Source: Octopus bimaculoides (taxonomy: Eukaryota). From it: DNA of 64,000 nt. The stretch covers positions 14,191,589-14,255,588 of the forward strand of contig NC_069004.1 of the NCBI RefSeq assembly GCF_001194135.2, given 5' to 3'. The notes under the pieces are model-generated. The model made no database searches, was not told the DNA's origin, and saw nothing but the letters and a program-made list of their open reading frames with translations. Positions 1 through 63,853 of this stretch are shown here, piece by piece. Both the position numbers and the translations under genes were made by a program. Within the stretch, counting starts at the first letter, position 1; each line of letters begins with the position of its first letter.

Positions 1-342
1 ACAGAAATATCAACGTTGGTCATTTACAGAAGCTGAAATTATTGAGAATATATCAGGTGAACTTATGAAATAAACCAGGAACCAAACTAATCTATAGAAA
101 CGAATTCATTTGGTCAACCATATGAAGAAGTAAAGAAAAGAAATAATAATAATAATCCTTACTGCTAAAGGCTCAAGGCCTTAAACTTTTGGAGAGGGGA
201 TAAATCGATTATATTGATCCCAGTGTGTAACTGGTACGTATTTCATTGACCCCACCCCCCAAAAAAAAGAATGAAAGACAGACAAAATACTGCTAAGCAT
301 TTCACTTGGCGTGCTAACGTTTCTGCCAGCTCGCTGCCTTCT

Positions 343-343
343 C

Positions 344-394
<51 letters not shown>

Positions 395-397
395 AAT
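343..397. repeat. (AAT)n microsatellite, representative of many
   Basis: Other AAT/ATT tracts at about 5443-5480, 6496-6566, 7249-7277, 9078-9115, 29020-29080, 32962-33090 and 47773-47803. CA/TG tracts at about 1195, 8174, 15348, 16912, 27240, 31093, 38882, 43325 and 51462. Confidence 0.95.
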
Positions 398-1192
398 GAG
401 CTGGAAAGGATGGCAAAATAGATCTGCTAAAAAATGAAATTGCATGAATGTGGGTAATGAAGAGAGTAATTGTCATCCCAATAGTTGTAGGGGTAGGTTT
501 AAGAAATATGCTGGAGAAATTGGAATTGACGTGAGGGTAGAACATGCTAAAAAAAAACTCCTCTATTGGGGATAGTGAGGATTTTGAGATTGGTACATGG
601 GTGTTAAGTGTAGTGGACTATGACTTTCATCCACTTTTCCCAGCATGCATGGGTCAGATGGAATTTATTGAGGCAGAATATTTTTCATGTCCAGATGTCA
701 TTTCAGGTGTCAACTCTCAGCTGTTTTCAAGCAAGGTAATAATTCCCCATTACTGGACATGTTTTCAGAGAATATTGGAAATGAACAACACTGCTTGTAT
801 CATGGTGACACCTATTTAACAACTACCACATGACATCCAGACAGACACATATTCACACACAATAACACACATGATGAGATTCTTGCATTTCTGTGGTCTG
901 AGTTCATATTTCACCAAGGTTAACTTTGCCTTTCATCCTTTTAGGGTCAATAAGACAGGTACCAGTTAAACATTGGGGTTGATATAATCAACTTACTCCC
1001 TCTGTTGAAATTCCTGGTCTTCTGCCAAAATGTGGAACCATTATTCCAATCTTTATTACATATTTTGTTATATTCTACATGAAGATATTCAAGTATATCT
1101 ACCAAATTAACTTAAGGTACCATGCAGTGGGACTGAACATGAAACTGTGTGGTTGGAAAGTAAACTTCTTAACCACGCAACCATATCTGTGC

Positions 1193-1228
<36 letters not shown>

Positions 1229-1389
1229 TTCACTACTGTATATGAGTATGACCACCAAAAAAGCCTGTGCAATGTTTGTTCTGTTCAAGTTGTACAGATA
1301 ATTCCTTGTCACTGTAATTGATATAAACACAATTAATCAGTGAGTACGTTGTTAGAAATCAGTAACAACTGACACTATTATATGCAAAT

Positions 1390-1660
1390 AGATAAATAAA
1401 TAATATAGAGGAAGAGGAGAAATTTCTGAAGCATTTGCAGGGCATCTGAGACAGGTGAGACTGTTGTAGGTCAGTATGTGCAGGGGAAGAATTCCAGGTG
1501 GTTGCAGTTCTGGAGAGTAAAGATTTTGTGAAGTGTTTAAAGGGTGATGGACTGATGAAATAGAGGCTAATTAGTTAAAAATTCTGATGATTTTGTAGTA
1601 ATAAAAGAGGAAGAAAGAAGGGCACATCTGAAGAAGTTAATTCAACCATAACAGTCACAG
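1390..1660 (-). mobile_element. Degenerate 3' end of an L2/Crack/Jockey-type LINE (post-RT tail)
   Basis: Minus-strand translation includes HFTKSLLSRTATTWNSSPA, similar to the SFxPRTxxLWNxLP motif at the C-terminus of these LINE ORF2s. Confidence 0.5.
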
Positions 1661-2264
1661 ATATACTTGAATATCTTAATGCAGAATATAACAAAGTTAT
1701 GTAATAAGGATTGAAATAATGGTTTCACATTTTGGCAGAAGATCAGGAATTTTGGTGGAGAGGGCAAGTTGATTACATCAACCCAGTGTTCAACAGATAC
1801 CTATCTTATCAACCTTGAAAGGATGAAAGACAAGTCGACCTTGGTGGAATATGAACTCAGAACATAGAGACAGACAAAATGCCGTTAAGCATTTTGCCTA
1901 GTGTGTTAACAATTCTGCCAAGTCACCTGAAATATTAGTCTCCAATTTAGTTTCAAATTTTGGCACGAGACTAGCAATTTCAGGGGTGGGTCAAGTTGAT
2001 TACATTGACCCCAGTGCTCAATAGGTACTTATTTTATTGACCCAAAAAGGATGAAAGGCGAAGTTGGTCTCAGTGGGATTCGAAGTTAGAATGTAGAGAC
2101 GGATGAAATGCCACTGAGCATTTTGCCCAGCATGCTAACGATATTGCCAGCTTGTCTGCAGTATTAGCACTTTCTACTCAATAAAGCCATCATCACTGAT
2201 GTTTTCTCTTTATAAGAAATTCCCAAACAAGATAAAGGACTATGGAGAAGGAGAAATTAAGACG

Positions 2265-2440
2265 AAAGGAATGAATTTACTTTAGACTGGTCATAAGAAG
2301 GAGGAAAACATCGAGATGGAAGAGAGTTCCAAAACATCGAGGAGGAAAACAACTTCAGGTCATAAGGAGGAGGAAGACATCGAGATGGAAGTGAGTTCCA
2401 AAGTCTGGCAGTTCAAGGAAAAAAAGCTACAACCATAAAA
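2265..2440 (-). mobile_element. L2/Crack-type LINE 3' end with an internal ~45-bp duplication
   Basis: Minus-strand translation SFFP*TARLWNSLPSRCLPPPYDLK. The block gtcataag(a/g)aggagga..acatcgagatggaag.gagttccaaa occurs twice (about 2290 and about 2359). Confidence 0.65.
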
Positions 2441-3559
2441 CACTTCCTTATTCATGTATATGTGTTTGTGTATACTGCTGAATATCTCCTAAACTGAGAG
2501 AACCAAGATTTGTTGTTAAATTAAAATCAAATGACAACGGCAAACAATTTCTGAATTGCAAACTGTTAAAAACACAAATGAAATCAACACTGCAATGTAA
2601 CCATATCCTAGTACATAACAACGCCATATGACATAAAGAAAGAAGGAAAAAAAAAAGAATGTTTCTAGAACATTTAAAATGTCTGTGGAAAATTATTTTC
2701 TAAAATGATTAAAGAGTTTATATATCCACAAAAAACAATAAATGAATAAATAAATGATGGTGAAGTCTAAATCATAAAAGTGTTTGATTACGGCATCTGT
2801 TAGACAGCAACTCATCATTTATTATAAATTATCTTGAGAAGCATTAACTCAAACATATTCTTCAATTTAATCAGCAGTGTATTGATTTTGAACAGATTTC
2901 CTTTCTAGAAGATTGCCAATAAACTTGAACATGATATCTACAGCAATAACAATAACAACAAAACCTCACACTAGTTATTTTTCTTTTTAACCAATGATAA
3001 TCTTTTTTTAATGCTTTTTGAATGGTTTTTTTTTTAAATTTAAATTTACTTAACCAGATATTGACAAAGTCTTTATTTTAAAAAGAACATGGAAAATATA
3101 ATAATGGTTTTAAATTTTGGCACAAAGCCAGTGATTTCGGGGGAAGAGGGGTACGTCAATTACATCGACCACAGTGCTCAATTGAAACTTATTTTATTGA
3201 CCTGGAGAGGAGGAAAGGCAAAGTTGACCTTGATAGAATTTGAACTCAGATTGTAAAGATGGATGAAATGCTGGTAAGCATTTAGTCTGGTGTGTTAATT
3301 ATTCTGCCAGCTCACCAAAAATATAATAATAATGGTTTCAGATTTTAGCAACAGGTCCAGCAATTTTAGGAGTGAGGGCAAGTCAATTACATCAACTAAT
3401 ACTTATTTTTACTGATTCCTAAAAGATGAAAGACAAAGTCAACCTTGACAGAATTTGAACTCAGAATGTAAAGAGCTAGAAGAAATGTTGTTTAGCATTT
3501 TATCCAACATGCTAATGATTCGGCCAGCTTGCCACCATAATCATAATAATAATCCTTTC

Positions 3560-4500
3560 TACCATGTCTAATAAGTGGCCCTTGATAGCACTGCCATCTC
3601 AAAATTAACTGTAATAGTCCCTGATCTGAAAGTCCTCCAGAACAGACTAACCAGTTTGTTTTTGCTGACAGCGTTTCCTTGAGGACATTAACACTCTTCT
3701 CTGCCACTAATCCTCTATAGATTGATGCAGTGGAATATACACAAATTCCATTGTTTGACTGGTGGGTGGTGGGTAGCGAGTGCCTCACAACATTCTAGAT
3801 GCTGTGCATCATATTTTGATCTTTGCTTCACCCAGGACTGCAGATATCAAAAGATATGTCTCATGAATGCTGCCCACATCCTTCCACCATCTAGGAATCC
3901 CTGCAAGTGACACAGCCCCAGCACATCTGTGTATCAGCAGCCAGTGCATGCCCAACCTGCCTTGTAGAAGGTGTTGGTAGCAGATGGACCACCTAACTAG
4001 TAGAACACAGTCCTTCCACAAGAAATTGAGTTTCTTGGAAACATGTACTGGGATACATATAATCATAGGTATGTCTGACACTTTCAGCCTGTGTTTTGGC
4101 TGAATTTTTCAGTTTTAAAAGTATAGCAAATAATGCTATAGTTTTTTATCATTTTCCAATTTAAATAATTTCTTCCAATATATTCTAGAGGGCTTGTTGT
4201 ACCACATGACATGAGAAATTTCATTAGCAGAGACATATAATTTTGCTTTTCACCATCTTCTGGATTATCTCTTGTTACGAAGAAATGTTGTTCAGTCTTA
4301 CAAAATTCTCCCATTTCTAGTAACAGTGATAGAGCCAACATTCCAGTTTGTCCATTTAGCATTCAGGGAAGGTTTGCCTTTACACAGCTGCAGAATAAAG
4401 AAACCACAATACTTGGTATGGTGTAAGAATCCAGGCTACAGAGATGAAATATTTCAAGAAACTTTTGAGAATATCATACAGAGATTGTGTCACAAATGAA
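3560..4500 (-). mobile_element. Highly decayed Gypsy-like LTR-retrotransposon pol fragment (RNase H end to integrase)
   Basis: Frameshifted minus-strand peptides: NGQTGMLALSLLLEMGEF resembles the RNase H C-terminal GRLARWSLLLQEYDF. NNGICVYSTASIYRGLVAEKSVNVLKETL resembles the integrase GIxHxxSSPxxPQSNGxAERxVxTLK. No LTRs seen. Confidence 0.4.
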
Positions 4501-5442
4501 CAAATGAGGAAGTGAAAAGAAAAATAAGGCAACCCCTATGAGAAACTTCTTACACAGTAAAGAAATGCAAGCTCAGGTGGTTTGAGCATATCACCCGCTC
4601 AACAGGGATGGCCAAAACAATCCTTCAGGGAACAATCAAAGGTGGTAAACACAGAGGAAGACAGAGAAAGAGGTGGGAAAACAACATCTGTGAGTGCACA
4701 GACTTAAAGATGAGAGACACAATGTGAGAGGTAGAAGACGGAGATGGGTGGAGGGATCTGGTTGCAAAGTCATCGGTGTTGTCCCAATGGTCAGCCAGAC
4801 TACATGATATGTAATGTAATGTAAGAATTACCACTATTGTTGTTCCTACTGTTATCTTCCAGAGTAATTATTTGAGTATTTGGGACATTTTCTTCACAAT
4901 TTACTATGTTCATTTTCTTCTTTCTCTCATCCATTTAGTCATGTGTTTTAATTCCGTGCTGCTTTTAGCCATTGTGGTGTTTAGTCATGAGACATAATTA
5001 TGGGTGGTAGCCATTTTTAGATGTGAAAATATAACGTGTGCAAATAAAATTTGAAAAGTTTGTGAAACAAACGTTTTTTTTCCTGTTGTCTGCCCTCAGG
5101 TATTAAAAACAGTCCCTCCTAAGGAAATTATAGTTCTTTTTACAAGAACTACAAAGAAAATTTCATATGGCAGTGTTTGAATAAATGTAGTTACAAAGGG
5201 AGAAGCAAAAACAATTTTTCCATACTACAAAAGTAATAATAATAATAGTAATAATAATAATTCTTTCTATTAAAGGCACAAGGCCTGAAATGTGGGGAGA
5301 GAAAGTAAATCGATTACATCAAACCCTTGTGCTTATTTTATTGACTCTGAAAGGATGGAAGAAAAGCTACTAAGCATTTTGTACAATATGCCAATGATTC
5401 GACCAGCTCACTGCTTTGATAATATTTTTTATTTACATAATT

Positions 5443-5480
<38 letters not shown>

Positions 5481-5707
5481 CCTTTCTACTAAAAGTACAA
5501 GGCCTGAAATTTTTGTGGGAAGGGGACCAATCAATTACATCAACCCCAGTGTTTCATCGGTATTTATTTTATTGACCCAGAAAGGATGAAAGGCAAAGTT
5601 GACCTTAGTGGAGTTTGAACTCAGAACATAAAGATAGACAAAATGCTGTTAAACGTTTTGCCAGGTGTGCTAACGATTCTGCTAGCTTGTCAAATAATAA
5701 TAATGCT

Positions 5708-6260
5708 GCTATGATAAAGTCTGTTTGTACCGTCATTAGCTTTTATGTTGCAAATACCAATATGAAATAAGAAAGAATTGGTATGAGCATATGTCTAGTA
5801 TGATGCCAGAGGATGAGAAAGTAACAATATTCTGAGATTATGATTTTCTGAGAGAGTAATTGAGCATCACTGACTGCTCGTGGACATACTAAACATGACA
5901 AATATGGTCAGGTCATTGACATAACCATACCAAATTACTTGAATATTTTGAGTAAAGAGGTTGAAAGAATCACCATGTACTCCAAACTGGGAGTGGAGAT
6001 GGCAAAACTGCTTGGAATGTGAAAGGGCGATGTAAAAGTGATACCAGTTGCAATCAGGGCATTAGGATCAATCCCATTAAAACTTCAAGGCTTCTTAAAG
6101 TTGTTGGGAATATCATGCAAGATTGAGTCATAAAAAAAAATATCAACCTTGCTAGGAACTGTGCACATTTTAAGAAAAATATCTGTCTGAGGCTCTTATT
6201 GTGACTTGACAGATGATTAAAAAGGCCAGTGCATTTTCCATCTAGACTGTGTAACAAAGT
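5708..6260 (+). mobile_element. 5'-truncated R4/Dong-like (REL endonuclease) non-LTR retrotransposon, 3' fragment
   Basis: Degenerate translation HDKVCLY..WYEH..DEKVTIF*DYD..VIEHH..VIDITIPN..VIPVAIRALGSIPLKLQGFLKLLGISCKIES*KKISTLLGTVHILRKISV*. This is the typical C-terminus of REL-endonuclease LINEs. It is flanked by (AAT)n on both sides. Confidence 0.85.
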
Positions 6261-6492
6261 AATAATAGTAATAATCCTTTCTACTAAAGGCACAAAGCCT
6301 AAAATTTTGGGAGAGGGGACTAGTCGATTACATCGACCCCAGGGTTTCCATGGTACTTAATTTATTGACCCCGAAACGATGAAAGGCAAAGTTGACCTTG
6401 GTGGAATTTGAACTCAGAATATAGTGATGGATGAAATGCCACTAAGGATTTCCCTCTGGTGCGCTAACAATTCTGCCAGCTCACTGCTTTAC

Positions 6493-6523
<31 letters not shown>

Positions 6524-6971
6524 TGATAATAATGATAATAATAATAATAATAATGATAATAATAATGAATTCAAATTTTGGCACAAAACCAGCAGTTTTG
6601 GGGAGGAGGTAAGTTGATTACATAAACTCCAGTGCTTGACCGATACCTATTTTATCAACCTCAAAAAGATGAAAGCAAAGATGACTGATGGTATTTGAAC
6701 TCAGAATGTGATGATTCTGCCAGCTTGCTGTCTTAATAAAATCAATAATAATCCTTTCTACTATTGGCTCAAAAGCTGAAAATTTGGGGGGAGGAGCTAG
6801 TCAATTTCATCAACCCTAGTGCTCGACTGGTACTTAGTTTACCGACTCCAAAATGATGAAAGGTAAAGTCAACCATGGCAAAATTTGTACTCAGAACATA
6901 AAAATGGATGAAATGCTACTAAGCATTTTGCCTGGCATATTAACATATCTGCCATCTCACCACCTCAGTGA

Positions 6972-7247
6972 TAAGGAAACCCCAAAATGGCTGAAGTTCA
7001 AAAGATAGTGCTCATGGGAACTGCCCATATCCTACGTAAAATACTGTCTATGTGATCTCAAATTTTAAAGCAAACACATAATTTTCTTATGGTTTCTTAA
7101 ACATTCACTTGAACAAAACTGTACAAATCCAAATATATGGTACCCTATGCATAACACCTACATGAACTTCTAACTTGTTGTCTCTTGAGGTCTCTGGGTG
7201 AGACTTGGATCCAACTTGTACAAATGCAAAACAAAAGTCAAACATAA

Positions 7248-7277
<30 letters not shown>
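6972..7277 (+). mobile_element. Second R4/Dong-like LINE 3' end with a distinct 3' UTR and (TAA)n tail
   Basis: GNPKMAEVQKIVLMGTAHILRKILSM* at 6975-7055, then about 190-bp UTR, then (AAT)n at 7249-7277. Confidence 0.8.
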
Positions 7278-7278
<1 letters not shown>

Positions 7279-8173: not shown

Positions 8174-8216
<43 letters not shown>

Positions 8217-9077: not shown

Positions 9078-9113
<36 letters not shown>

Positions 9114-9443
9114 TACTGAGAGTTTGAATAGTTAATTTCTAAATGTCCAAAAGATACATGAAGCTAAACTGGAAAAAAAAAAAATGAGAAGCAAGATTAA
9201 ACCAGGAGAAAAATGGAAGACAACATAAGAAAAAAAAAAAAAAAAAANNNNNNNNNNNNNNNNNNNNNNNNNNNNNNNNNNNNNNNNNNNNNNNNNNNNN
9301 NNNNNNNNNNNNNNNNNNNNNNNNNNNNNNNNNNNNNNNNNNNNNNNNNNNNNNNNNNNNNNNNNNNNNNNNNNNNNNNNNNNNNNNNNNNNNNNNNNNN
9401 NNNNNNNNNNNNNNNNNNNNNNNNNNNNNNNNNNNNNNNNNNN

Positions 9444-9477
<34 letters not shown>

Positions 9478-9760
9478 CTTTGTTTAGTGGAAACAAATAT
9501 AGAGGTGTTGCTATTTAATTGGAGAAAAAGCAATGCTTATTTTACTGAACTACAACATTTTATTTCTAGAATTCTTTTACTAGTTTCAGTCTGTGGCCAT
9601 GCTGGGGCATTATCATCAAAAGTTTAGTTAATTCCACTACCCCCACCCAGCACTTTTTTCAGCTTGGTATGTATTTTGTTGACCCCCATTTACTGGACCA
9701 CCAAACTATGGGAGCATAATCAGACAACATAAACAATACCAGTGTTTAGACTGGTATAGA

Positions 9761-9810
<50 letters not shown>

Positions 9811-10964: not shown

Positions 10965-11185
10965 GGCCTGTGAGTGCTGGTGCCACATAAAAAGTAGCCA
11001 TGCCAGAGCTGTGTAAAAGCACCCAGTACACTCTGTAAAGTGGTTGGCATTAGGAAGGGCATCCAGCTGTAGAAACCAAGCCTAAACAGACATGGAACCT
11101 GGTGTGGCCCCTGGCCTTGCCAGCTCCTGTCAAACCGTTCAACCCATGCCAGCATGGAAAAGAGATGTTAAATGAAGATGATGTG
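10965..11185 (+). mobile_element. SINE/LINE-tail family C (…aggaagggcatccagctgtagaaacc…aacccatgccagcatggaaa…(GAT)n)
   Basis: The same block recurs at about 14050-14190(-), 27990-28170(+), 29720-29930(-), 32125-32280(-), 35590-35800(+), 38740-38850(+), 40245-40420(-), 40685-40830(-), 44390-44620(-), 52860-53142(+) and 57900-58125(+). Confidence 0.8.
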
Positions 11186-13465
11186 TAATTCTTCTGTCAA
11201 GACAGTTGTGTTTTGTTGGGGGTTTTTTTTTGGCGGGGGGTGGGGTGGGTGTTCCTAGCAGATTAAACACTCTTGTAGAAACTTTCTCATTGGAGCAGCT
11301 AGTGCAACAACAGGACTTTGTCTTTCATCCTTTTGGAATTGATGAAAAAAAAAGACCAGTTGAACATTAGGGTTGATGTAATTGACTTACCCCAACTCCC
11401 ATGAAATTACTGGACTTGTTCCAAAATCTGAAACCATTACTACATGATTATGGATAATCCAGCAAAACAGTTAATGAATTAAGATTTTAGAACTGAGGCC
11501 ACTAGAAAATTAGTTGTGTACTTGTACTCTGGTATACGAGTGGCATCACCAATAAGCGAATAAAAAAAATAAGAGGATATTTTTGAAATGGATAATGAAG
11601 TGCTATCAATCAACCCCTGTGAATTTAATAAAGGGTCCAATCTGAAATTCCGAGGATATTACTGAATACAACAAGCACCTGAAGAAGTCTGCAGAAAAGA
11701 AGATTAGAAAAACACTGTGACCGTTACAATCAAGCTGAGGACACTAGTCTGGATATATTGTGTATAACTTCTTAGCATGTAGGATTCTCAGTTAAAATGT
11801 GGTTTATCATCAAGTATGATAGCAAATAATACAGTTACTCACTACTTTATTTTTAACAATGTTATTTTAGGTGCAGGCATAGATGTGTGGTAAGAAATTT
11901 GCTTCCTGGTCACAGAGTTTGAGGTTCAATCCTACTGTATGGCACTTTGGGCAAATATCTTCTACTATAGCCTGTGGGTGGATTTGGTAGATGGAAAGTG
12001 AAAGAAGCTCGTTGAGTGTATATGTGTGTGTGTGTATGACAAACACAGACATATATACACTCATGTGGATCAGCAAAAAAAACTGAGACTTGCCCAAAGT
12101 GCCACAGTAGGACTGAACCTGGAACCACGTGGCTGGGAATCAAACTTCTTACCACACAGAAATGCTTGCACTTATATACATGATTAATTCAACACAATAA
12201 ATAAACAAACATTCCATTCAACAGAATAATTCTGAATGGTAAGTAGTTAAAGAAGAGCACCTGCTTAAGACTGTCAGAACTCAGTTTCACTGCAACTACA
12301 GGTAATGGACTTATTTTATAAACTTTACAAATTGCTAACTGAACTACTGAAGAAAATGAAGATATCAATCAATAGAGAAATATAGACTACAATCAACGAG
12401 ATTATAGGAGATAAAATTAAACGTGACAGTTGGTGAGTAGCTAGGTGGAGGAAGTGAAGGGACGGTTTCAAGTCTTAAGAACAGAAAAAATAGGTTAAAT
12501 GTTTTTTGATTTGTTACCTTTTCTATTGTTTTTTTAGTTTTTTAACTACTATTAACAAAGGTTAAGAGGCTAACTGAATAATTATCTCTAACAACAGATC
12601 ATGGTGGAGTTGATTTATCTTGAACAATGGAATTGCTATTATCTTCATATATGGGAGGGAAAGAAAAAAACAAGAAACTCCAATTGTTGTACATGCAATT
12701 GCTAATTAATGAGAAAGTAGTTAAAACTCAGCAAATTTGAAACTGGAATATTTCAACAATGTCACTGAAACTTTACTAATTATTCTGAGAGATAAAATTG
12801 AAGTTTTCTCCACCATGGGCATGACTACAAATGCTAACATGGCTGTATAGTAAGAAGTTTGCTTTCCATCTGCATAATTTGGGGGTTTAATCCCACTGCA
12901 AGGCACCTTGGAGAAGTGCCTTCTACTATAACTCCAGGTTGACCAAAGTCTTGTGAGTGGATTTGGTAGATGGAAACTGAAAGAAGCCCATTGGCTATAT
13001 ATGTATATGTGTGTGTGTGTATGTGCCCTTGCGTTTGTCCCCCACTATCACTTGACAACTGGTGGAGGTTTGCTTACATCTTCATATATTAGTGGTTCAG
13101 CAAAAGAGACTGATAAAATAGCTACCAGATTTAAAGATAAATGCTGGGGGAAATTTTTCAACTAAACTCTTCAAGGAGGGGCCCCCAGCATGGCCACAGA
13201 CCAATGAATGAAACAAAGAAAAGATAAGATATATATTCATGTACCCCCTACATTGATTCGCACCCACCACCACCACCACCACACATATCAAACTTTTATC
13301 AATAAGTGGTAAATCTATTAACAAAGTCAACATAGGTGGTTTATGAATTCACTCATTCAATCTCCTGCCTTGAAGCTAGTGAGGGAGCCTCTACATAATC
13401 ATCTGACTTGAAGAAGAAATAGCAACCAGATTTCCCTCAAAGCACATTGGACAATGTAGTAATCA

Positions 13466-14186: not shown

Positions 14187-14234
<48 letters not shown>

Positions 14235-15345: not shown

Positions 15346-15384
<39 letters not shown>

Positions 15385-19600: not shown

Positions 19601-21136
19601 ATGGAGGAAGAATTAATCAATCATCAGGTTTAACACAACTACATGATACACTGGCTGCTATTAATGGAGATTTCTCGATTGCAAGCCTTTAGGTCATGTT
19701 TCCCCTCCTTATCACTGGTCTCAGAGGCCCTGAAGACAGTCATGCATGCCATACAACAATTACTCCTCTTGTGACTAAGTGATGATAAACAAACAAAATA
19801 AAAATCACTAAATGGTAAAATGTACGATAATTTTTTTTTCTTTTTCTAAATAACTTCACTTTTTCAAATTCTGCCAGTAGGAAGAAAACAAAAAAAAAAA
19901 AAGGAATAAAAAAGTGAATTTGATAATGTTTTATTTTTAACTAAGTAAATTGTAAATAGCTTCAAAGAACACTGGAAAATCTACAGAACAAAAACGAAAA
20001 AAACCCAAAAAAAAAACGATTATGTAAAGTGACATCAATGTTTCATAATCAGGTTGAGAATAAGAATAAATATATATTATCATATAAAGTAAATATTTCC
20101 CTATTGATTGAAGCTGAGTCTATCAATAATGGTCGTCAAGGATAAAGAAGATTGAGAAGCCAGCTGGTGTATTAATAAAGGCCAGAATCCACATAAAATT
20201 ACTATTAATGATGTTTTTACATGTATATGAGAAATGAAACAATACTGAATAAATGTTTGCTTAGATATTTACATCACCAACAGAACCAAAACTACAAAAA
20301 CTACAAAAAAAAAATTATTACTGAGGTTTTAGCCAAGATAAAGATAAAGCAACGTTATGTTTTCATATCATAAAAGTCAACCTGTTTGAGTAATATTTCA
20401 GAATTTTATGAAATATTTTGATGAAAGGGTCTCCTGGCATAAAAGGAAAAAAAATCTAATTATTGCTGATAGGTTTACGAGGAAAAAAAAATCATTAGAG
20501 ACATAAAAATTTTGTTTTTATATAATAACTTATATATAAAAAAAAAAGCTAATAGGTGCAGGCATAGCTATGTGGTAAGAAGCTTGCTTCCCATCCACAT
20601 GGTTCCAGGTTCAGTCCCACTGTGTGGCACCTTGTGTGTGGATTTGGGAGACATGGTTACATACCATCATCACCACCATCATTATCATCATTACTCTAGT
20701 CCACTTAGTTGACAAAGATGAGTAGTATCTGTCTTTCAAAAGGCCAGCCTTATCATATTCTGTGTCACGCTGAATCTCCCTGAGAACTACGTTAAACGTA
20801 CATGTGTCTGTGGAATGCTCAGCCACTTGCATGTTAATTTCATGAGCAGATTGTTCTGTTGATCAGATCAACTAGAACCAGCATCATTATAACCAACAGA
20901 GTGCCAGTTTGCATACAATGATGTAGGCTAGATTTTTTGGGGGAAAAATGCATACCAAATAGGTGCAGGCTTGGCTGTGTGGTAAGAAGCTTGCTTCCCA
21001 ACCACATGGTTCTGGGTTCAGTCCCACTGCGTGGCACCTTGGGCAAGTGTCTTCTACTATAGCCTTGGGCTGACCAAAGCCTTGTGAGTGGATTTGGTAG
21101 ACGGAAACTGAAAGAAGCCCATTGTGNNNNNNNNNN

Positions 21137-21462: not shown

Positions 21463-22559
21463 ATGTATATCTCTGTGCATCTGTGTTTGTCTCCCCACCA
21501 TCACTTGACAAATGATGTTGGTATGTTTACATCCGTATAACTAAGTGGTTCGGCAAAAGAGAACGGTAGAACAAGTACTAGGCTTACAAAGAATAAGTCC
21601 TGGGGTCGATTAGTTCAACTAAAGGCGGTGCTCCAGCATGGCTGCAGTCACATTACTGAAACAAGTAAAAGAATAAAAGGATTTAGAGAGTGAGGTTGGC
21701 CTGTGCAAGACCTTTAATCACTTTAAATACTTCAAGGAAAGGCATTACTTGATTTTTAATTTATTATAGGACTGCCCATAGCCCCTGAAAAAGGTAAAAC
21801 ATTAAATGATAAGAAAGCTAAAAATAATTCTATGAACTGGCAGAATCTTCACAGCATTGGTGAAGAAAAAAATAAATATCTTGCAGCATTTAATTTAGAG
21901 TTCAAATCCTGTGGAGGTCAACTTTGCCATTCATCCTACTGGAGCTGATTAAATAAAGAGCTCAAGACACCACCACCACCACCGCCGCACACACACACAC
22001 ACACCAAAATTTTGGCCTTCTGGCAATGTTAGAAATCAATCTTTTTCTACTCATTTTGATTCAACATGTTAAAATAATAAAACCAACAATAACAAAAAAA
22101 AAGACACATTAAACCAATCCTTCTTCCCCACTGNNNNNNNNNNNNNNNNNNNNNNNNNNNNNNNNNNNNNNNNNNNNNNNNNNNNNNNNNNNNNNNNNNN
22201 NNNNNNNNNNNNNNNNNNNNNNNNNNNNNNNNNNNNATATATATATATATATATAATATAATATAATATAGGATAAAATCTTTATAAGAATTTATCAAGT
22301 AGTCAGCGTGAGGCATTACTATATAGTTAATGCCCTTATATAAATTAGTATACAAATTTAATCTGCGGTCCATGGGATGAACCGTTTTAACGATGCATCC
22401 TGCCCGAAGCTCGTCGAAACGCCGGTGTTAAAACGTGGGTAGCTGATGAAGTAGAATGTTCTCTATGTGGCTCGTGTGTTTTCTCGTCTACGTTTGTTTG
22501 CAATGTTCTGTACCCAGATATGCACCTATACATACAGGTGGATGTCGGTATGCACATAC

Positions 22560-23560: not shown

Positions 23561-24193
23561 ATGGGTTTATAAAAATTCTAGTGACAACTTCAGCTTCTAA
23601 TTTAGTTTATATATAAGAAAAGATAAAAGGAAAAAAAATCATGTGTGTGTGTGTGTATAATATATTTATATAGATGTAAATTAACTTATTGCATGTTATT
23701 TTATTTTCTAAACAGAATTTATTATTATAATTATCATTAATATTTATTTATTTTTTTTGTAGTTTATTTTAACATGAAGTAAATGATATTGTAATAATGA
23801 TAAATGATATTTTGTCAGTTCAGAAAGTAATTGACACAAATATGAGAATATGTGAATGNNNNNNNNNNNNNNNNNNNNNNNNNNNNNNNNNNNNNNNNNN
23901 NNNNNNNNNNNNNNNNNNNNNNNNNNNNNNNNNNNNNNNNNNNNNNNNNNNNNNNNNNNNNNNNNNNNNNNNNNNNNNNNNNNNNNNNNNNNNNNNNNNN
24001 NNNNNNNNNNNNNNNNNNNNNNNNNNNNNNNNNNNNNNNNNNNNNNNNNNNNNNNNNNNNNNNNNNNNNNNNNNNNNNNNNNNNNNNNNNNNNNNNNNNN
24101 NNNNNNNNNNNNNNNNNNNNNNNNNNNNNNNNNNNNNNNNNNNNNNNNNNNNNNNNNNNNNNNNNNNNNNNNNNNNNNNNNNNNNNNNNNNNN

Positions 24194-47772: not shown

Positions 47773-47804
<32 letters not shown>

Positions 47805-47805
<1 letters not shown>

Positions 47806-48860
47806 GGTGATGAGCTGGCAGAATCGTTAGCATGCTGGATGAAATGCTTAATGGTATTTCACCTGTCACTACACTCTGAGTCCAAATTCCACCAAGGTCA
47901 ACTTTGCCTTTCATTCTTTCGGGCTTGATAAATTAAGTACCAGTGAAACACTGGGTTGGTGTTATTGACTCATCCCCCTCCCACAAAATGGCTGCCCTTG
48001 TGGCAAAATTTGAAACCATCGCCATCATCATCATAAAAGGTGGCGAGCTAGCAGAATTGTAAGCATGCCTGACAAAATGCTTAGCAGCATTTTGTCTGTC
48101 TTTACATTCTAAATTCAAAATCTGTCAAGGCCGACTTTGCTTTTCATTCTTTCAGGGTTGATAGAATAAGTACCAGCCAAGTATTAGGGTTCATGTAATC
48201 AACTTGCACCCTCCCGCCAAATTGCTGGCCTTGTACCAAAATTTGAAACCATTATTATTAAAGGTGATGAGCTGGCAGAATTATTAGCATGCCAGACAAA
48301 ATGCTTACCAGCATTTCATCCATCTTTATGTTTTGCATTCAAATTCAACCAAGGTCGATAAAATAAGTACCAGTTGAGCACTAGGGTTGAGGTAATTGAC
48401 TAATTCTCTCCCACTAAATATCAGGACTTGTGCCTGCTATAGGAGGAAGGATTATACATCATCATCATTATTATTATTACCGTATTTTAATATGTATAAG
48501 GAGCCCCCTAAATTTTGGGGCTTAAAATTTTGACAAAAAGTTTTGTAATGGATTATAATACTATCCATGTATAAAAAACTCCTATATTTTTTTAACCTAA
48601 TTTTTGAAAAAAAAGGGTTCCTTATACATGTTAAAATACAGTAAATGGTGAGCTGGCAGTATCATTTGAGCATCAGTGCCTAGTGGTATTCCTTCTGCTT
48701 CATTACATTCTGAGTTCATATTTCACTGTGGCTGACTTTGTCTTTCATCCTTTTAGGGTCAATAAGATAAGAACCATTTGAGTACTGGGATTGACGTAAT
48801 TGACTTGTCCCGTTTCTAAAACTACTGGTTTTGGACCAAAGTTTAAAACCATTATTATCA
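47805..48860 (+). mobile_element. Head-to-tail array of four family A SINEs in (TTA)n/(ATC)n spacers
   Basis: Heads (gg)tg(a/g)(t/c)gagct(g/a)gcag at about 47805, 48039, 48262 and 48645, each followed by the ctttgcctttcat…gataa…agtaccag body. Confidence 0.85.
48480..48641. mobile_element. 162-bp Tc1/pogo-type MITE inserted in the SINE array
   Basis: TA|ccgtattttaatatgtataaggagccc ... gggttccttatacatgttaaaatacag|TA: ~27-bp imperfect TIR with TA duplication. Confidence 0.8.
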
Positions 48861-49790: not shown

Positions 49791-50557
49791 TTTAATTCCT
49801 TTGGGGACCTTCTAAAATACAACTATACATTACATGTATGTTCCTAGTCTTTTATAAGTCTTTCATCTTTTAGTTGTTTCAGTCATTTATTTGACTGTGG
49901 CCATGCTGGGGCCATGTCTTGAAAGGTTTTAGTTGAACAAATCAACTTCAGGACTAACTTTTTTTTTTTAAGACTAGTACTTATCCTATCAGTCTCTTCT
50001 GCAGAATGGCTAAGTTACAGGGACATAAACACACCAACACTGGTTAAGTGGTGGTGGGATCAAAGACAGACAGATACACACACACACAGACGATGGGCTG
50101 CTTTCAGTTTCCGTCCACCAAATCCGCTCACAAGGCTTTGGTTGGCCCAAGACTATAGTATAAGACACTTGCCCAAAGTGTCATACAGTGGGATTGAACC
50201 TGGAACTATGTGGTTTGGAAGCAAGCTTCTTACCACACATTCATAAGTTTTCTTGTTAAAACATTTCTTTTTACAGTTGGGTGTCCTTCATACAACCAAA
50301 AACTCAGCAATAAACACGGGTGAAACACAAAAAAAAACAAAACAGAAAGCAACTGAAAGATGAATTGGTAGCTGCTTTTGACTTTTCCCTTCCTACTCCA
50401 CAAAAGATGGAGGCCAAACACATTTACAAAGATTTGGACACTTTTATGGCTACAGTAATCATGTAAAAGCATAGAATTAGCTTTCGTAGAGCAGAAGTTA
50501 TTTAGTGTGAAACAGAGACTGACTTGTAGATGCGACAGAAAAGAAAGCAACAAAGAA

Positions 50558-51459: not shown

Positions 51460-51507
<48 letters not shown>

Positions 51508-54522: not shown

Positions 54523-54687
54523 GGTGCAGGAGTGGCTGTGTGCTTAGTAGCTTGCTTACCAACCACATGGTTCCAGGTTCAGTCCCACTGCATGGCATCT
54601 TGGGCAAATGTCTTCTACTATAGTCTCGGGCTGACCAAAGCCTTGTGAGTGGATTTGGTAGACAGAAACTGAAAGAAGCCCGTCGTA

Positions 54688-54730
<43 letters not shown>

Positions 54731-54915
54731 TTGTGTGTCTGTGTTTGTCCCCCTAGCATTGCTTGACAACCAATGCTGGTGTGTTTATGTCCCCATCACT
54801 TAGCGGTTTGGCAAAGGAGACCGATAGAATAAGTACTAGGCTTACAAATAATAAGTCCCAGGGTCAATTTGCTCGACTAAAGATGGTGCGCCAGCATGGC
54901 CGCAGTCAAATGAAC
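54523..54915 (+). mobile_element. Best-preserved family B SINE copy
   Basis: ggtgcaggagtggctgtgtg..tagcttgcttaccaaccacatggttccaggttcagtcccactgc...(TA)n(TG)n...ggtgcgccagcatggccgcagtcaaatga. Confidence 0.9.
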
Positions 54916-56234: not shown

Positions 56235-56396
56235 AGTAAACAGAACAAGATGCATTAACAATCAGTAAACCGTAAAGAGGCATTAACGGACAGTAAACAG
56301 TGCAAGAGGCATTAACACTCAGTAAACAATACAAGAAGCATTAATACTCAGTAAACAATATAAGAGGCATTAACATTCTGTAAACAGTACAAGAGA
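56235..56396. repeat. 29-bp minisatellite, ~5.5 copies (consensus agtaaacagtacaagaggcattaacactc)
   Basis: Direct tandem units are visible at 29-nt spacing. Confidence 0.9.
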
Positions 56397-58464
56397 CTTT
56401 CTTCTTCGTTTTTTAGTCCCTCAAGTCCAAGGAAGATGATTCTGCAATTTCTTGCTAGACAATCTGCACAGATAATTTGTTTATAGTGATCAGATGTTTG
56501 TATTGTACGTTAGCTCATTGCTTCCATCAAATCAACATTGCTTGTACATATGTATAGTGTACCACACATCAGATGTTGAAAAGACTGTAGAGCAATGTGA
56601 AATGAAGTGTTTTGCTCAAGAACACAATGCACCATCCAGTCTGGAAATTGAAAACACAATCTTGCAATTGTGAATGCAACAGCCGAACCACTAGGCCATG
56701 TGGCTTCACTACATTAACATTCAGTAAACAAGACAGATTAACAAGAAAGATTAGCGCTAGCATATGATGGTAGTAAACAGTCAGTGTCACTGTGAAATTG
56801 TAATATATTCAGTAATTTCTTAGTCATGATTAGCAAGAGTGAAACTGGTTGACTATGTAAATATTTTATTTCATAAAAAAATAGATACATTCTGTGCATT
56901 TTCCTTCTTACATTTTTCACTACAACTCACCACATGGAGGCAAAAAATCTTTCCAACGAATCTTTTCCCTATATATGGATGTACGCACACACATGTAACC
57001 TACAATATGGTGAACAGGATGATTGTAGTCTCTTGTAGCCAAGAATGGTGATTTTGCAGTTTCTTGCTGAACAACTGACACAAAGGGTTTATTCATTGTG
57101 ACAATCAAATGTATGTGCTGTTCCTCAGCTCGCTCACTTCATCAAATCGACATTGCCTAAACAGGTGCATGGTGTACCATACATCTGCTGTCACAATGAT
57201 CACAGAGAAATAGGAGATGAAGTGTTTTGTTGAAAAACACAATATACCATCGAGTACAACACCCTAACCATTAGGCCATGTACCCTTGGTGAACAAGATA
57301 TTAACTATTCAACTTACATGAAACCTTCTGATTCCCACACAGGTTGTAAAGGAAATAGTGACTAGTAGATGGTGCTCTGATCTTACCAAATGGTTTTCTA
57401 TTTTTTTTCTCAGACTTTATTTTCTACCTGCCCATTATGCCTACTTATACATCCAATACATAGAACTCTATTCTTTTCACAATAAATCAATAGAAAAATA
57501 AAAGCAAGATAGAGAATATTTAACTGGAGTTTACTAAACTGATGGTAGAGTTGTGAAGATCTTTAAAAAGTTACATGTCAAGCTAGTCTGTAAGCAAAGA
57601 ATTATTAACAATGTATTCACAATATACTATAAAGGTCATAATCTTTACAGAAAATCTTTGTAAGAACCTTAAGATTCCATAGGGGTAGTTCTTAGTCACA
57701 GGTTTTAAATCATAAAGATGAGAGAGAAAACTCTACACAAGCAACTAGATGGACTAAGGCATGTAGAATTTAGTATCCTGTCAATAAAAAAAAAAGCAAT
57801 GAAATTATTGCAGTGAGTTTGGACTCATGTTCCATAGAATAACAGTTCGAAGTCTTGTTCATATAGAGAACATTATATTTAGCATTCAATTTCACCGGTG
57901 TCACATAACTGGCACCTGTGCCAGTGGTACATAAAAGGACCTGTGCTGATGGCACATAAAAAACACCCATTACACTCTTGGAGTGGTTGGCATAAGGAAG
58001 GGCATCCAGGCATAGAAACCAAGCCAAAACAGACTGGAACATGGTACAGCACTCCAGCTTACCAGTTCCAGTTAAACTATCTAACCCACACCAGCATGGA
58101 AAGCAGATGTTAAATGAAAACGATGATTATAATTATATAAAAAAAGAAAAAGGAGAAATTAGAAATTTTGAAGATGACCAAGAGGTCATACTTTCTATAT
58201 AACAAATTACATTATTTTTGGTGGGAAAATATTGGTAGAATAATCATGTCAACTATCTGGATGGAAAATGTATTAGAAATCTGTGTGGGGAGATAGCAAG
58301 GATTAAAAAAAATATTATTTTATTTTTATCTTGGGTAATTGAGAGAACCTTCTACAAACATAAAATTAAGTGTCATTTTGAAAATTATCATTGTTGTTGT
58401 GATTAATGTTACCATTATAACAATGTTCTGTTATTTCAAGGAATTAGTGTTTTGCCTGGTTTAA

Positions 58465-58680
58465 TCCTTCAGCATTCAGATTACTGTGTCAAATGTAATG
58501 TATATTTATTTACATTGTTTTAAATTAATCATGCATTATCGCATAGCTGCAAGATTTAGATGGATGTGATTGTTTATTTTTAGAATGACATTGTCGGATA
58601 GTTGTGAGATGCCAGATGTGATCAGTTTGAAGATAAAACTGAATATTTAGGCCAGATATGGTTGGTTTAAGTGCTAAAGG
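58465..58680 (-). mobile_element. M1 TTAA MITE copy
   Basis: TTAA|tccttcagcattcaga ... gtttaagtgctaaagg|TTAA. Confidence 0.8.
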
Positions 58681-58779
58681 TTAAATATACTTCCAACTGG
58701 AACATAGCTAATGGTTTACGATGAGAAGCATTTTGTAACTTCTGTATAAGAAATATTTTTCTCATCTTCATATCTGTTC

Positions 58780-58895
58780 TTACTCTGTAATGAAAACTTC
58801 CCGGATTATTTTTGCTGAACCTGGTGGGCTTGTTTCCAACATTGCACCTACTCCAAGATGCTCAGGTTTGTGCTCAGATTTTTTGTCACTGTTCC
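58780..58895 (-). mobile_element. R4/Dong-like LINE C-terminal fragment next to (AAT)n
   Basis: Minus translation ALGTVTKNLSTNL...GSAKIIR resembles GALGTVPKNL...LGTARILR. Confidence 0.55.
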
Positions 58896-59004
58896 CAAGG
58901 CGCTTATAATAATAATAATAATTGGCAGCATCATGACTTTGCTAAACTATCCATTACTTGAGGAAGTCATACTTCAAGTTGGAATAATATTCTACTTGTG
59001 AAGG

Positions 59005-59560
59005 TAGTGTGGCTTAGTAGTTAGGATATTCAGCCCACAGTCGTGAGGTTGTGAGTTCAACATCCAACAGGATGTTGTGTCCTTGAGCAAGACACTATTT
59101 CACATTGCTCCAGTTCACTCTGCTGGCAAAAACGAGCAGCACCTGTATTTCAGAGGGTCGGCTTTATCACATTCCGAGTTACACTGAATCACCCTGAAAA
59201 CTATATTAAGGGTATGCGTGTCTACAGAGTGCTCAACCATTTGCACATTAATTTCTCAAGCAGGCTGTTCCATTGATCAGTTGGAACCCTCATTGTCGTA
59301 ACAGATGGAGTGTTATGTCCTTCAGCAAAACACTTTATTTCACATTGTTCCAGTCCACTTTGCTGGCAAAAATGAGTAGTACCTATATTTCAAACGGCCA
59401 GGCTCATCACATTCTATGTCACACTGAATCTCCCTGAGAACTGTGTTGGGGGTACATGAGTCTGTGGAATGCTGAGCTACTAGCATGTTAATTTCACAAG
59501 CAGGCTGTTCTGCAGATCAAATCAACCGGAACACTCATTGTCATAACTGATGGAGTACCA
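59005..59560 (+). mobile_element. Family D SINE plus a headless tandem second copy
   Basis: 59005-59312 has the tRNA-like head (gtggcttagtagttagg...gagttcaa). 59313-59560 repeats from tgtcctt.agcaa.acact to gatggagt. Confidence 0.85.
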
Positions 59561-62423
59561 GTTTATTTTTCTGTTTTCTTTTTGCTCAATGACTACATTA
59601 ACCAGCCTTTTGTGTAGAATTCTTATTTTAGGATCGTGTAACAAAGTCTCGCTTGCAACAATTTCACTTCACTGTTTCCAAGGGCTTGCATTTTTATTTA
59701 TACAAAATGGCTATAGTGTTTTTCTATGGATGCAAAACCAAATCACTTGCAAATATTCTTGTGAATTATTGCATGCTTATAGTATTATTATTCCTATGCT
59801 TTGTATTCATTTTGAGCTAACTGTGGATATTCTAATACAATGTGAGTTAAGGTCTCATCTGAATCATTGTACATTCCACATTTGGGTGAGCAGTTCTGCA
59901 GAACATCATCATCATCATCATCATCCAATAGTCTTTTATTGTATGCTTTCACTGCACAAATGAACACAAACATGCCTTGTGTGTGAGGAGTGTTGTGTTT
60001 TGTATATGTTAATTTTACTGTAATGAAAATACTTTCCGTTATCTCTGTGCAGTACTTTTTCTATATTTTGCACATATTTGTATATCCTGGGGTTTGGGTT
60101 ATGCGATTGTCTGAATGTTTTTATTTTCTTACCCAAGGCACCTATTATTAAAGGAATTGTTCTGCTTTCAGCTTCAAGTTTATTAGTATTTTTAGATACT
60201 TATATTCAAGTAATTTCTCTCTTTTTTTTTTTTTCAAGAAATAAGATCTTTTGTCTCTTGGTAGGCTTAGAAAACAATATCTGGTCAATTTGTCTTGATC
60301 TTCCTATCTGTGTGTATTTACATATTTCAGTGTCTGGTTAGTTAACCATTCTCTGAAACCTTCCCTGCTATATAACTGTACCACTTCTTTTCTATTAGTA
60401 TTTTATCATGCTGGTATAACTTCAAGTATATGTGTATGTACGTATGTATGTATNNNNNNNNNNNNNNNNNNNNNNNNNNNNNNNNNNNNNNNNNNNNNNN
60501 NNNNNNNNNNNNNNNNNNNNNNNNNNNNNNNNNNNNNNNNNNNNNNNNNNNNNNNNNNNNNNNNNNNNNNNNNNNNNNNNNNNNNNNNNNNNNNNNNNNN
60601 NNNNNNNNNNNNNNNNNNNNNNNNNNNNNNNNNNNNNNNNNNNNNNNNNNNNNNNNNNNNNNNNNNNNNNNNNNNNNNNNNNNNNNNNNNNNNNNNNNNN
60701 NNNNNNNNNNNNNNNNNNNNNNNNNNNNNNNNNNNNNNNNNNNNNNNNNNNNNNNNNNNNNNNNNNNNNNNNNNNNNNGAAACATGGTTCTTTTCCCTAA
60801 AACTATATATTTATATATATTCCAGGTTTCATAAAATAGTACAAATGTATGAACTGGATCAATAAATGATACCACTTTCCTGGTGGAGCATAAGGGTAGA
60901 GTTTTTAGGTGACTCCTTCATAGGGTTTTAACAGAAACAAGTGTCATTACTTTCCAGCTGGATTCCTAAGCATGACAAACTAAGACTGAGGATATTATTC
61001 ATCTATCTTGTTCTGGGTCTACCCTTAGGTCTTTTGCCAGTTAGCTTGGCTTGAATCCCTCTTGGAATAATTTTTTTCCTGCTACATTCTAATCACATGT
61101 TCATAGGACTGGGGCTCTGACCCTCAATACAGAGAAGCTATACATCCGGTCAAGTAACAATAGTTCAGAGATTCTTCAGAAGAATCTCATATCAGCTGCT
61201 TCTACTCACAACCACAGTCATTTAGTCATTATCCAACATTCATGACTGTAGATGAGGATAGGCTTTAAAAAAAAAACAAATGGAAAACAGCAAGTTCAGC
61301 ATTTTTTACCAACCTCTCCTCTTTTGAGGATCGAATGTTGGAGCATATGATGCACGATATAAAACTAACAACAAAAAAAAAAAAACACATCCATCTAATT
61401 TATACTAACATGGGAAGAGGGCTCATCACCATCAGGAAAGTGCAAAAAAATTTACCAAAAAAATAAACAATAAAGTGAATACAATGACATTATCAAATTC
61501 TGAACAAAATAAATTATTCAGACATCGTTCATTACTCCAGCACTTGTTTTGTTCCCAATTTTTCAAAATGATTTTATATATTTCCATTTTTATTAATGCA
61601 TCAAATTCAACATGGTTGCATACAATTTATAATTTAGTGAGAAAGCAAACTAAAACATTTATTATTGATATTAATGCTGCTGTTTTGCTTGTTGTTGTTG
61701 TTGCTGCTGTTTCCCTATTAGCTCTAGTCAATATTGATATAAACAAGGAAGCAATGAAAATGAAAAAAAAAAAAAATGTACAGGGGTTCCAGAGCTGGAT
61801 TGACCACTATGAAAATAAATGGCAAATAGCAAAACAATGAGCAAAATGCATTTCCAGATTCAGATAGGGAGAAACAGACAGAAAAAAAAAAAAAGCAGAG
61901 GTAGCAAGCTCATCTAATTAATGCTGCAAACAAATATGCAGGCCCACACATACAACATACACACAGACACACACACATGTGACAAAAGTAACAACAGTAA
62001 AGACATCAGACGTTTCATTTTACCTAATTTTTCACAGAACGGAAATATGAGGGGAAACATAAAGAATTAAAAATCAAAATGGCAAGGGCAATAGCGAAAA
62101 TAAAATAATAAGATATATAACACATGACGAAAATGCATTTACACTTAGATGTATCCATATCTTAAGAAGAGAAAAAGTATATTGGCAGGTTATATGATAA
62201 GAAGTTTGCTTCCCAGCCATGTTGTTCCGGGTGCAGTCCCAAAGTGTCACACCTTAGGCTAGGGAATTCTACTATAGCCTCAGGCCAACCAAAGCTTTAT
62301 GAGTCAGTTTGGTAGACAGAAACTGGAATAAGCATGTCTTTTACAAAATAGATACGTTGATTGATGGAAAAATGGATGGATAGCTACATACAAATGAATA
62401 GACATATATACATGTATGGATAT

Positions 62424-62468
<45 letters not shown>

Positions 62469-62519
62469 TACTCTTTTACTAGTTTCAGCCATGCGGCTGT
62501 GGTCATGCTGGAGCACCAT

Positions 62520-62745
62520 ATGTGTATCCTCGCTTCCTTTTCCCCTGCGGGTTCCAGTCAAGTGCTTGTCATGTCACACTTGAGGGTTCTTAATGCAGTG
62601 TGTGTCCAATCCATCTCCATATCCTTTGTCTAATCTGAACATGTACGGGCTCCTGGTTGGCCCTTTCCCACAGGTCGTTGTTTGGAATTCTGTCCAACCA
62701 CTTCAGATGGAGGATCTGCCGGAGACATTTGTTGATGAAGGTCTG
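62520..62745 (-). mobile_element. RTE (BovB-like clade) LINE ORF fragment running into an assembly gap
   Basis: QTFINKCLRQILHLKWLDRIPNNDLWERANQEPVHVQIRQRIWRWIGHTLH*EPSSVT*QALDWNPQGKRKRG, the classic post-RT RTE region in a single frame with two stops. Confidence 0.9.
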
Positions 62746-62845
62746 NNNNNNNNNNNNNNNNNNNNNNNNNNNNNNNNNNNNNNNNNNNNNNNNNNNNNNN
62801 NNNNNNNNNNNNNNNNNNNNNNNNNNNNNNNNNNNNNNNNNNNNN

Positions 62846-63235
62846 ACATACAATATCACACAGACTCATACATCATACACACTTTTATATATACATACAA
62901 TATGTAATATCATACGTACACACTAAAATATAAACACTCGTTATACAATATCTTCGTCATACATTGTATAACATGATACATACACAAGGATATCCAGTGG
63001 TATAAACCCACACCATGTATAGCATACAGTTATACAACCCCATACATATAGAACACATTAGCATCTCTGTACATGACTATGTAACAGCATACATTACACA
63101 ATCTTCTAAATACGCAAATAGACACACAAGCATACATTATATTTTCACAGAAGCTTACATTATACAACATTATACACACACACTTCATACACACATCACA
63201 CATACATTAAACATACATTATACACAAATACAAAC
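62846..63235. repeat. Strand-biased A/C-rich degenerate (CATA/CACA) low-complexity tract
   Basis: The plus strand has very few G over about 390 bp. Confidence 0.75.
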
Positions 63236-63844
63236 GCGCAATGAAGAAATCGATGTTGGCTGAGGGCAGACGACAGGTGGTTTTAAAGTGAGGGTGCATT
63301 TCTACTCTATTTCCATTGTAATATAAGTCCCCAACTTTCGTGGCCAATTCACAGTTTAGTAGTGGGCGTCAACGTTAGCAATGAAGAGTTGCTAACTAGT
63401 TGTATGCCTTCTCTATAGAGAAGAGAAGAATATAGAAGAAGACTCGACGAAAGTGTGGCACAATAAAATCTCATGAAACAGAATTAGGATTTAGCTATTG
63501 ATATCGAATAATAAAACCTATAAAAAAATTACCATAATATTAATTATTATTATTGTTATGCAGTGACTTCCTTTGGAAACGAAAGCGAAAACTGCAGCAG
63601 CAAAACGGTTTCAGATAAAATTCTTCTAATTAAAATTATGAGTTTATAGAATATGGATGTAAGATTATAACAAATCATTATTATACATACAGGACACACA
63701 CACAGACACACACACAGACACACACAATAGGGCATTGGAAAATGGTGAATTAGAGAAAAATTATAGAAAATTATATATAACCTTTAATTTCTTTTCTGAA
63801 TGTGATAATCCTGGTTTTGGAAGGAAGGAAAAATATCAATATTT

Positions 63845-63853
63845 TAAGGATAC
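63845..63853 (-). promoter_or_regulatory. U12-type (minor spliceosome) 5' splice site GTATCCTTA
   Basis: The minus strand immediately after the exon reads GTATCCTTAAAA. The established U12 donor consensus is RTATCCTT(T), and it does not resemble the U2 donor GTRAGT. Confidence 0.85.

Follow-up and report, generated by a model that had tools for sequence, protein, structure and literature searches.

A tomosyn exon of Octopus bimaculoides opens a long, apparently ancient intron with a U12-type donor

Introduction

The intron analysed here opens directly after a tomosyn (STXBP5-family) exon in a 64,000-nt stretch of Octopus bimaculoides DNA (contig NC_069004.1 of assembly GCF_001194135.2, positions 14,191,589 to 14,255,588 of the forward strand; the whole stretch is called the window below), and its closest described relatives are minor introns of vertebrate genes. 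Olthof et al. 2019 (BMC Genomics, the MIDB paper, PMC6717393) list in their supplements minor introns of STXBP5 (tomosyn-1), STXBP5L (tomosyn-2), LLGL1 and LLGL2, the last two being lethal giant larvae (Lgl) genes. In STXBP5 the 5' splice site reads GCT/GTATCCTTT (here and throughout, a slash marks the border between exon and intron) and the branch site AACTCCTTAATG, and the intron has 29,181 nt in the human gene and 32,462 nt in the mouse gene. STXBP5L combines the 5' splice site AAT/GTATCCTTA with the branch site GAATCCTTGACT, and here the human intron measures 86,662 nt and the mouse one 15,113 nt. The donors of LLGL1 and LLGL2 are GAT/GTATCCTTT and GCT/GTATCCTTT and open introns of 1-2.5 kb in both species. 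Another very long minor intron in the same table, of 71,531 nt, belongs to UBE2H. Full-text searches that paired STXBP5 or tomosyn with words for minor introns turned up no relevant passage in the main texts of papers; the data sat in supplementary tables. With regard to molluscs, a survey of more than 3000 genomes, Octopus sinensis included, found minor introns to be relatively enriched in this group, and O. sinensis counts among the species that have them (Larue & Roy 2023, PMC10639083).

Compared with these systems, the intron in the window most resembles that of human and mouse STXBP5L, which follows the same exon (ending in ...GGVR/) in the same phase, starts with the same intronic 9-mer, GTATCCTTA, and in human is very long. 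It differs in that STXBP5L is a vertebrate paralog, that the 3' end of its intron is known, and that in mouse the intron is comparatively short. STXBP5 shares the junction, but position nine of its intron is a T, against an A in the window, and its intron stays below the lower bound that we obtain for the window. The tomosyn gene of the gastropod Bulinus truncatus is a mollusc ortholog with an exon 81% identical at the protein level and a donor of the same U12-type class, whereas its intron is shorter, with 10.4 kb compared to 64 kb or more in the window. LLGL1 and LLGL2 encode paralogous WD40 proteins and carry an intron at the homologous codon position, although they are different genes (TVEHGFP instead of TVRHGFP) with short introns. 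The type, the position and even the large size of the intron are already known for this gene family, and given the 86,662 nt of human STXBP5L its length in the window is not exceptional.

The best-supported description of the intron in the window is thus that of an ordinary orthologous minor intron. We give a probability of about 0.8 to the reading that the window contains a tomosyn exon followed by ~64 kb from the 5' end of an intron that is orthologous to the catalogued STXBP5/STXBP5L minor intron and whose size would most simply have arisen neutrally.

Results and Discussion

The exon belongs to the tomosyn family

Direct reading and homology searches agree on a 98-nt tomosyn coding exon at 63951..63854 on the minus strand. 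Its frame is open for 32 residues and leaves over AT, the first two bases of the next codon, so that the intron behind it is in phase 2 (split codon AT/). When the 32 residues were used as a phmmer query against the full library, 315 matches were obtained at E<=1e-3, the best of them 81-91% identical, and tomosyn proteins searched against the window by tblastn hit the exon at E values of 1e-9 to 1e-14. The named relatives are syntaxin-binding protein 5 or 5-like proteins, for example 'Syntaxin-binding protein 5-like [Bulinus truncatus]' and a protein of Argiope bruennichi. In protein word-index searches the exon, once padded, gave one hit, and a chimeric query for the N-terminus brought up no protein of a cephalopod. 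Proteins of the Lgl type, which have TVEHGFP in the place of the tomosyn TVRHGFP, match the exon at a lower identity of 62-69%; by homology in the N-terminal WD40 propeller the exon is therefore closer to STXBP5 than to Lgl. In alignments with full-length proteins it covers approximately residues 47-78, which makes it probably coding exon 2.

The exon is preceded by the 3' end of another intron (63952..64000, minus strand), where a pyrimidine-rich tract leads to a CAG acceptor with its AG at 63953-63952. This acceptor reads ...ttgtgtcttccttacAG and looks like one of the U2 type. The same exon start, cag/AC, occurs in three homologous sequences that are described below: a Logan contig (L001), the Bulinus gene (L002) and an Lgl-type exon (L004).

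No second tomosyn exon accompanies this one in the 64-kb window, and the upstream exon lies outside it. With the exons on either side out of sight, the exon might be an orphan, that is, a duplicated or pseudogenised fragment of tomosyn that is not followed by any exon 3. However, its reading frame and both of its splice sites are intact, and its identity of 81-91% is to proteins of distant species, whereas decay in a region so rich in repeats would not have left a perfect acceptor, an open reading frame (ORF) and a U12 donor in place. We regard an orphan origin as very improbable and treat the exon as a genuine part of a tomosyn gene.

A U12-type donor at a conserved junction

At position 63853, directly behind the exon, the intron opens with GTATCCTTAAAA and runs to lower coordinates on the minus strand. 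Its 5' splice site, GTATCCTTA (63853..63845, minus strand; GT-AG subtype, phase 2), was recognised from sequence and orthology; read with the end of the exon as AT/GTATCCTTA, it is a perfect match to the U12 consensus /RTATCCTT. The 8-mer GTATCCTT occurs twice in the window when both strands are counted, against 2.3 occurrences expected, and taken alone is not beyond chance. What is not random about the donor is its place at the exact end of a conserved exon and its conservation in more than 100 homologs.

This conservation can be read even from proteins, as ORF calls made on raw genomic contigs account for many of the database entries, and such ORFs run through the exon into the intron. Among 148 homologous representatives, 105 continue in this manner as [MLIV]-Y-P, the translation of NT/GTATCCT, and a further 20 are spliced forms that continue as xxG.PGV; the other 23 are too short past the exon or are odd gene models. 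The read-through set covers the two kinds of tomosyn paralog found in vertebrates (...QTGALR-LYPF and ...SRSGGVR-MYPF) as well as proteins of the arthropod type and the Lgl type. The end of the exon and phase 2 also agree with vertebrate STXBP5, STXBP5L and LLGL1/2.

The same donor was found in DNA. The Logan contig (L001) reads cag/ACT...GAT/GTATCCTTT. In Bulinus truncatus, GAT/GTATCCTTT begins an intron that can be followed over its whole length of 10.4 kb to its end at ...aatgCTTAACcttctgcag/T, with a U12-like CTTAAC branch motif 10 nt before the AG, and exon 3 behind it encodes IGQPGVDCHCSHESEVSIVQILFLINE (IGQPGVD...NE). An insect assembly (L003, GCA_011392965.1) likewise has the donor GAT/GTATCCTTT, and the 22 nt over exon end and donor (GGATCTCTTAGGAT/GTATCCTT) are 100% identical between positions 63846-63867 of the window and positions 1950-1971 of the insect sequence. 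The Lgl-type exon (L004; Logan SRR31341448, 1563-1668; TVEHGFPSQPSALAYDP...) ends in ACT/GTATCCTTT and has the same exon boundaries as the window at 63845-63953. Beyond exon and donor, no similarity was found between the window and the Logan contig L001, the Bulinus gene or the insect sequence.

One deposited protein, P0041, which corresponds to the insect sequence and reads ...LR-IYPI, pointed to an intron of the AT-AC kind. With GAT/GTATCCTTT in the DNA, however, that protein proves to be the product of a faulty, mis-spliced gene model.

The occurrence of the same donor in a gastropod, an insect and an Lgl paralog supports the view that the intron is ancient, and since tomosyn and Lgl genes carry it at the same position it is older than their duplication. 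Taken together, donor and orthology strongly support its classification as a U12-type (minor) intron of the GT-AG subtype. The U11 and U12 small nuclear RNAs (snRNAs), U4atac and U6atac are established actors in minor splicing. On the intron in the window, U11 snRNA would pair with the donor GTATCCTT, and U12 snRNA with a branch site resembling TCCTTRAY, some 10-15 nt ahead of the acceptor and outside the window; U6atac would then displace U11 at the donor, and catalysis would follow.

Conversion of minor to major introns is a known evolutionary route, and the 3' end of this intron lies out of sight. The major (U2-type) spliceosome might act on this donor, or conversion to the U2 type might have taken place at the 3' end of the intron in this lineage. 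Against such use, GAT/GTATCCTTA follows the U12 consensus at all of the intronic positions shown and lacks the G at -1 and the G at +5 that U1 prefers. Converted introns, moreover, usually lose the ATCCTT core, which here is perfect and identical to that of catalogued minor introns. We consider use by the major spliceosome or conversion extremely unlikely and retain the assignment to the U12 type.

The starting point of this analysis was a sequence-only reading of the window, which had described a tomosyn exon followed by a donor of U12 consensus; exon and donor are as it described them, read directly from the DNA. It had also stated that vertebrate STXBP5 and STXBP5L have minor introns at the same junction, which is confirmed by the tables of PMC6717393 and by the read-through ORFs, and its proposal of an ancient minor intron agrees with the donors of the gastropod, the insect and the Lgl paralog. 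It went too far in one respect, as vertebrate genes already have long U12 introns at this junction.

Exon 3 is absent from the readable sequence

The remainder of the window (1..63853, minus strand) is the 5' portion of the minor intron. It comprises 63,853 positions, 61,669 of them read and 2,184 given as N, and contains no tomosyn exon; the 3' splice site lies past position 1. The expected exon 3 has about 81 nt and encodes xFGRPGVD...NE. A tblastn search with 15 tomosyn proteins, run with a permissive word size and at E<=10, matched nothing in the window other than the exon at 63951..63854. A profile hidden Markov model (HMM) of exon 3 (20 peptides, 28 columns), applied unfiltered to all six-frame segments of at least 12 amino acids, gave 9.4 bits at best (E=0.19), several-fold less than the score to be expected of a genuine exon 3. 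As both searches were negative, exon 3 is absent from the 61,669 readable bases, and the earlier statement that no exon for the x-FGRPGV... continuation lies in the window holds to that extent.

Two candidates were considered and rejected. The sole motif match for the expected continuation, FGQPGV at 12947 (minus strand), lies inside a SINE-like repeat (SINE, short interspersed nuclear element) that recurs, for example, at 39026, and its likeness to tomosyn stops after six residues. The motif TCCTTGAC has a single minus-strand copy, at 20135-20142, with an AG 17 nt downstream; the phase-2 frame that would follow reads I-LSFNQ and then a stop, and the site is not a 3' splice site. In total this motif occurs twice in the window against 4.1 occurrences expected, which is below chance.

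Eight runs of N, of 10-633 N each, interrupt positions 1-63853. The two nearest to the donor are a gap of 100 N at 62746..62845, whose low-coordinate flank is a LINE-tail fragment (LINE, long interspersed nuclear element), and one of 325 N at 60454..60778 with a (GTAT)n-like simple repeat on its left flank; both are missing from the gap list of the scan program. Farther from the donor, 482 N at 34202..34683 fall within a (TA)n microsatellite that is seen on both flanks, and 633 N at 32329..32961 have (TA)n to the left and (TAA)n to the right. The right flank of the gap at 23859..24193 (335 N) opens with TATATATA and continues into a dispersed repeat, while that of the gap at 22134..22236 (103 N) consists of (AT)n. 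The shortest gap, 10 N at 21127..21136, sits exactly where the body of a SINE-like element meets the (TA)n(CA)n tract inside it; it is colinear with intact SINE-like copies near 12990 and 54680, and little is likely to be missing from it. The last gap, of 196 N at 9248..9443, has poly(A) to its left and (AT)n to its right.

The possibility that such a gap hides exon 3, or that the scaffold is misjoined, would make the intron much shorter and its apparent length of more than 63 kb an assembly artefact. The sizes of all eight runs are estimates, seven of them could nominally take in an exon of 81 nt, and those at 62746 and 60454 begin within 3.4 kb of the donor; the gastropod ortholog, moreover, has only 10.4 kb. 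On the other hand, seven of the eight gaps are flanked on one side or both by a microsatellite or poly(A), and the remaining one adjoins the LINE fragment, so that they are typical assembly breaks in low-complexity or repeat DNA. The smallest of them, as just described, is colinear with intact repeat copies, and neither tblastn nor the HMM detected a partial exon 3 at the edges of any of the eight. Long introns are also normal at this place in other animals. The human STXBP5L intron reaches 86.7 kb, and in the scorpion Centruroides sculpturatus the first 380 codons of an STXBP5-like gene (GCA_000671375.2) span ~181 kb; tomosyn genes of more than one lineage thus have very long introns in their 5' part. 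A much shorter intron therefore seems unlikely to us, and an intron that continues past the window remains the preferred reading.

Because the gap sizes are estimates, the 63,853 nt are only a conditional lower bound on the length of the intron, dependent on the eight gaps and on correct scaffolding. Of the earlier claim that the intron exceeds 63 kb, the lack of exon 3 in the readable bases stands, and the figure itself is to be taken as this bound.

Repeats and the size of the intron

The sequence behind the donor is full of interspersed repeats, which bears out, in a qualitative way, the idea of the sequence-only reading that transposons had driven the expansion of the intron. Overall, 26.5% of the window has a match elsewhere in it. 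The dispersed families number at least three (three to four), with elements of ~100-400 nt in 12-15 copies each, in both orientations and at 75-94% identity. TRF (Tandem Repeats Finder) added 55 rows of tandem repeats, some of them overlapping and most with units of two or three nucleotides. A Pfam search of the ten most complex ORFs came back without a domain, as did Rfam and tRNA scans without a family or a tRNA gene; no nested gene or RNA was detected by these scans.

Growth of the intron by accumulation of interspersed repeats and microsatellites is thereby qualitatively supported, at least as far as the repeats can be recognised from the sequence. Most simply, the large size would be a neutral by-product of this accumulation in a repeat-rich genome. 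Neutral expansion is favoured because the lengths of minor and major introns are tightly correlated across species (rho 0.903; Larue & Roy 2023, PMC10639083).

The opposite view would be that selection keeps both the minor type and the great length of the intron as a kinetic bottleneck that limits or times the expression of tomosyn in neurons. U12 introns can splice more slowly than others and can be rate-limiting. The constraint on the donor is extreme, with 22 nt identical between the window and an insect, and tissue-dependent retention and alternative splicing of minor introns are reported by Olthof et al. 2019 (PMC6717393). Yet the content of the window is silent on kinetics, and conservation of the donor is to be expected for any U12 intron that is retained. 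The length of the intron at this junction varies from 10.4 to 86.7 kb among species, roughly nine-fold, while genome-wide the length of minor introns follows that of major ones, and the repeats in the window are degraded and contain no detectable conserved element. Selection for a bottleneck is accordingly improbable in our judgement, and neutral growth is the explanation that we prefer.

A regulatory bottleneck, as the earlier reading had also proposed, would for this intron be the application of a hypothesis on minor introns in general. Very doubtful is its most far-reaching form, in which the tomosyn minor intron would be among the longest U12-type introns of any invertebrate (at least 64 kb and possibly more than 100 kb) and its slow removal by the minor spliceosome would gate, in time or in dosage, a protein that restrains the release of synaptic vesicles in a mollusc with a large brain.

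Several points weigh against the reading of the window as a tomosyn exon with a neutrally enlarged orthologous minor intron. The sequence is broken by eight gaps of estimated size (2,184 N), and the scaffolding is assumed to be correct. Both the 3' splice site and the branch site of the intron lie beyond position 1, so that the U12 call is one from donor and orthology, and we infer that the host has a minor spliceosome and uses it at this intron. Finally, the repeats are identified as probable transposable elements by copy number, orientation and recognition of motifs.

In the genome from which the window comes, the ancient U12 intron of tomosyn and Lgl genes has been retained with a perfect donor, and its growth has brought it at least into the range of sizes for which human STXBP5L is a known example. 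Beyond annotation the significance of this is small. When gene models are built, a U2-type donor should not be forced at this place, and exon 3 should be expected far away. The locus is also a candidate for measuring the retention of a minor intron in neural tissue.

Repeat families in the intron

The SINE-like repeat is exemplified by a copy at 20972..21124 (plus strand) with a tRNA B-box-like GGTTCAGTCCCAC; it is present in 12-15 copies, in both orientations and at 75-94% identity. The repeat includes a (TA)n(TG)n tract in its interior and recurs at 12820-13040, 54560-54760, 50090-50233 and about ten more loci. In translation it yields FGQP(G/R)V, which is able to mimic the start of tomosyn exon 3.

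Two fragments resemble the tail of a LINE in translation. The first, at 62527..62745 on the minus strand, is degraded (QTFINKCLRQILHLKWLDRIPNNDLWERANQEP...RWIGHTLH*...NPQGKRKRG, with two stops), is followed by a (TA)n tail and adjoins the 100-N gap; a protein database search with it returned one unnamed match of 58 amino acids. The second, KLRWFEHITR...GRQRKRW, lies at 4542..4724 on the plus strand. By their motifs, both would be C-terminal tails of LINE ORF2.

The second dispersed family, with an example copy at 10980..11183 (plus strand), has 12 copies in both orientations at 76-89% identity. The third, exemplified at 1715..2152 (plus strand), occupies about 12 loci, and it also occurs in tandem at 47795-48316, where a 233-bp unit is repeated 2.3 times with 73% matches.

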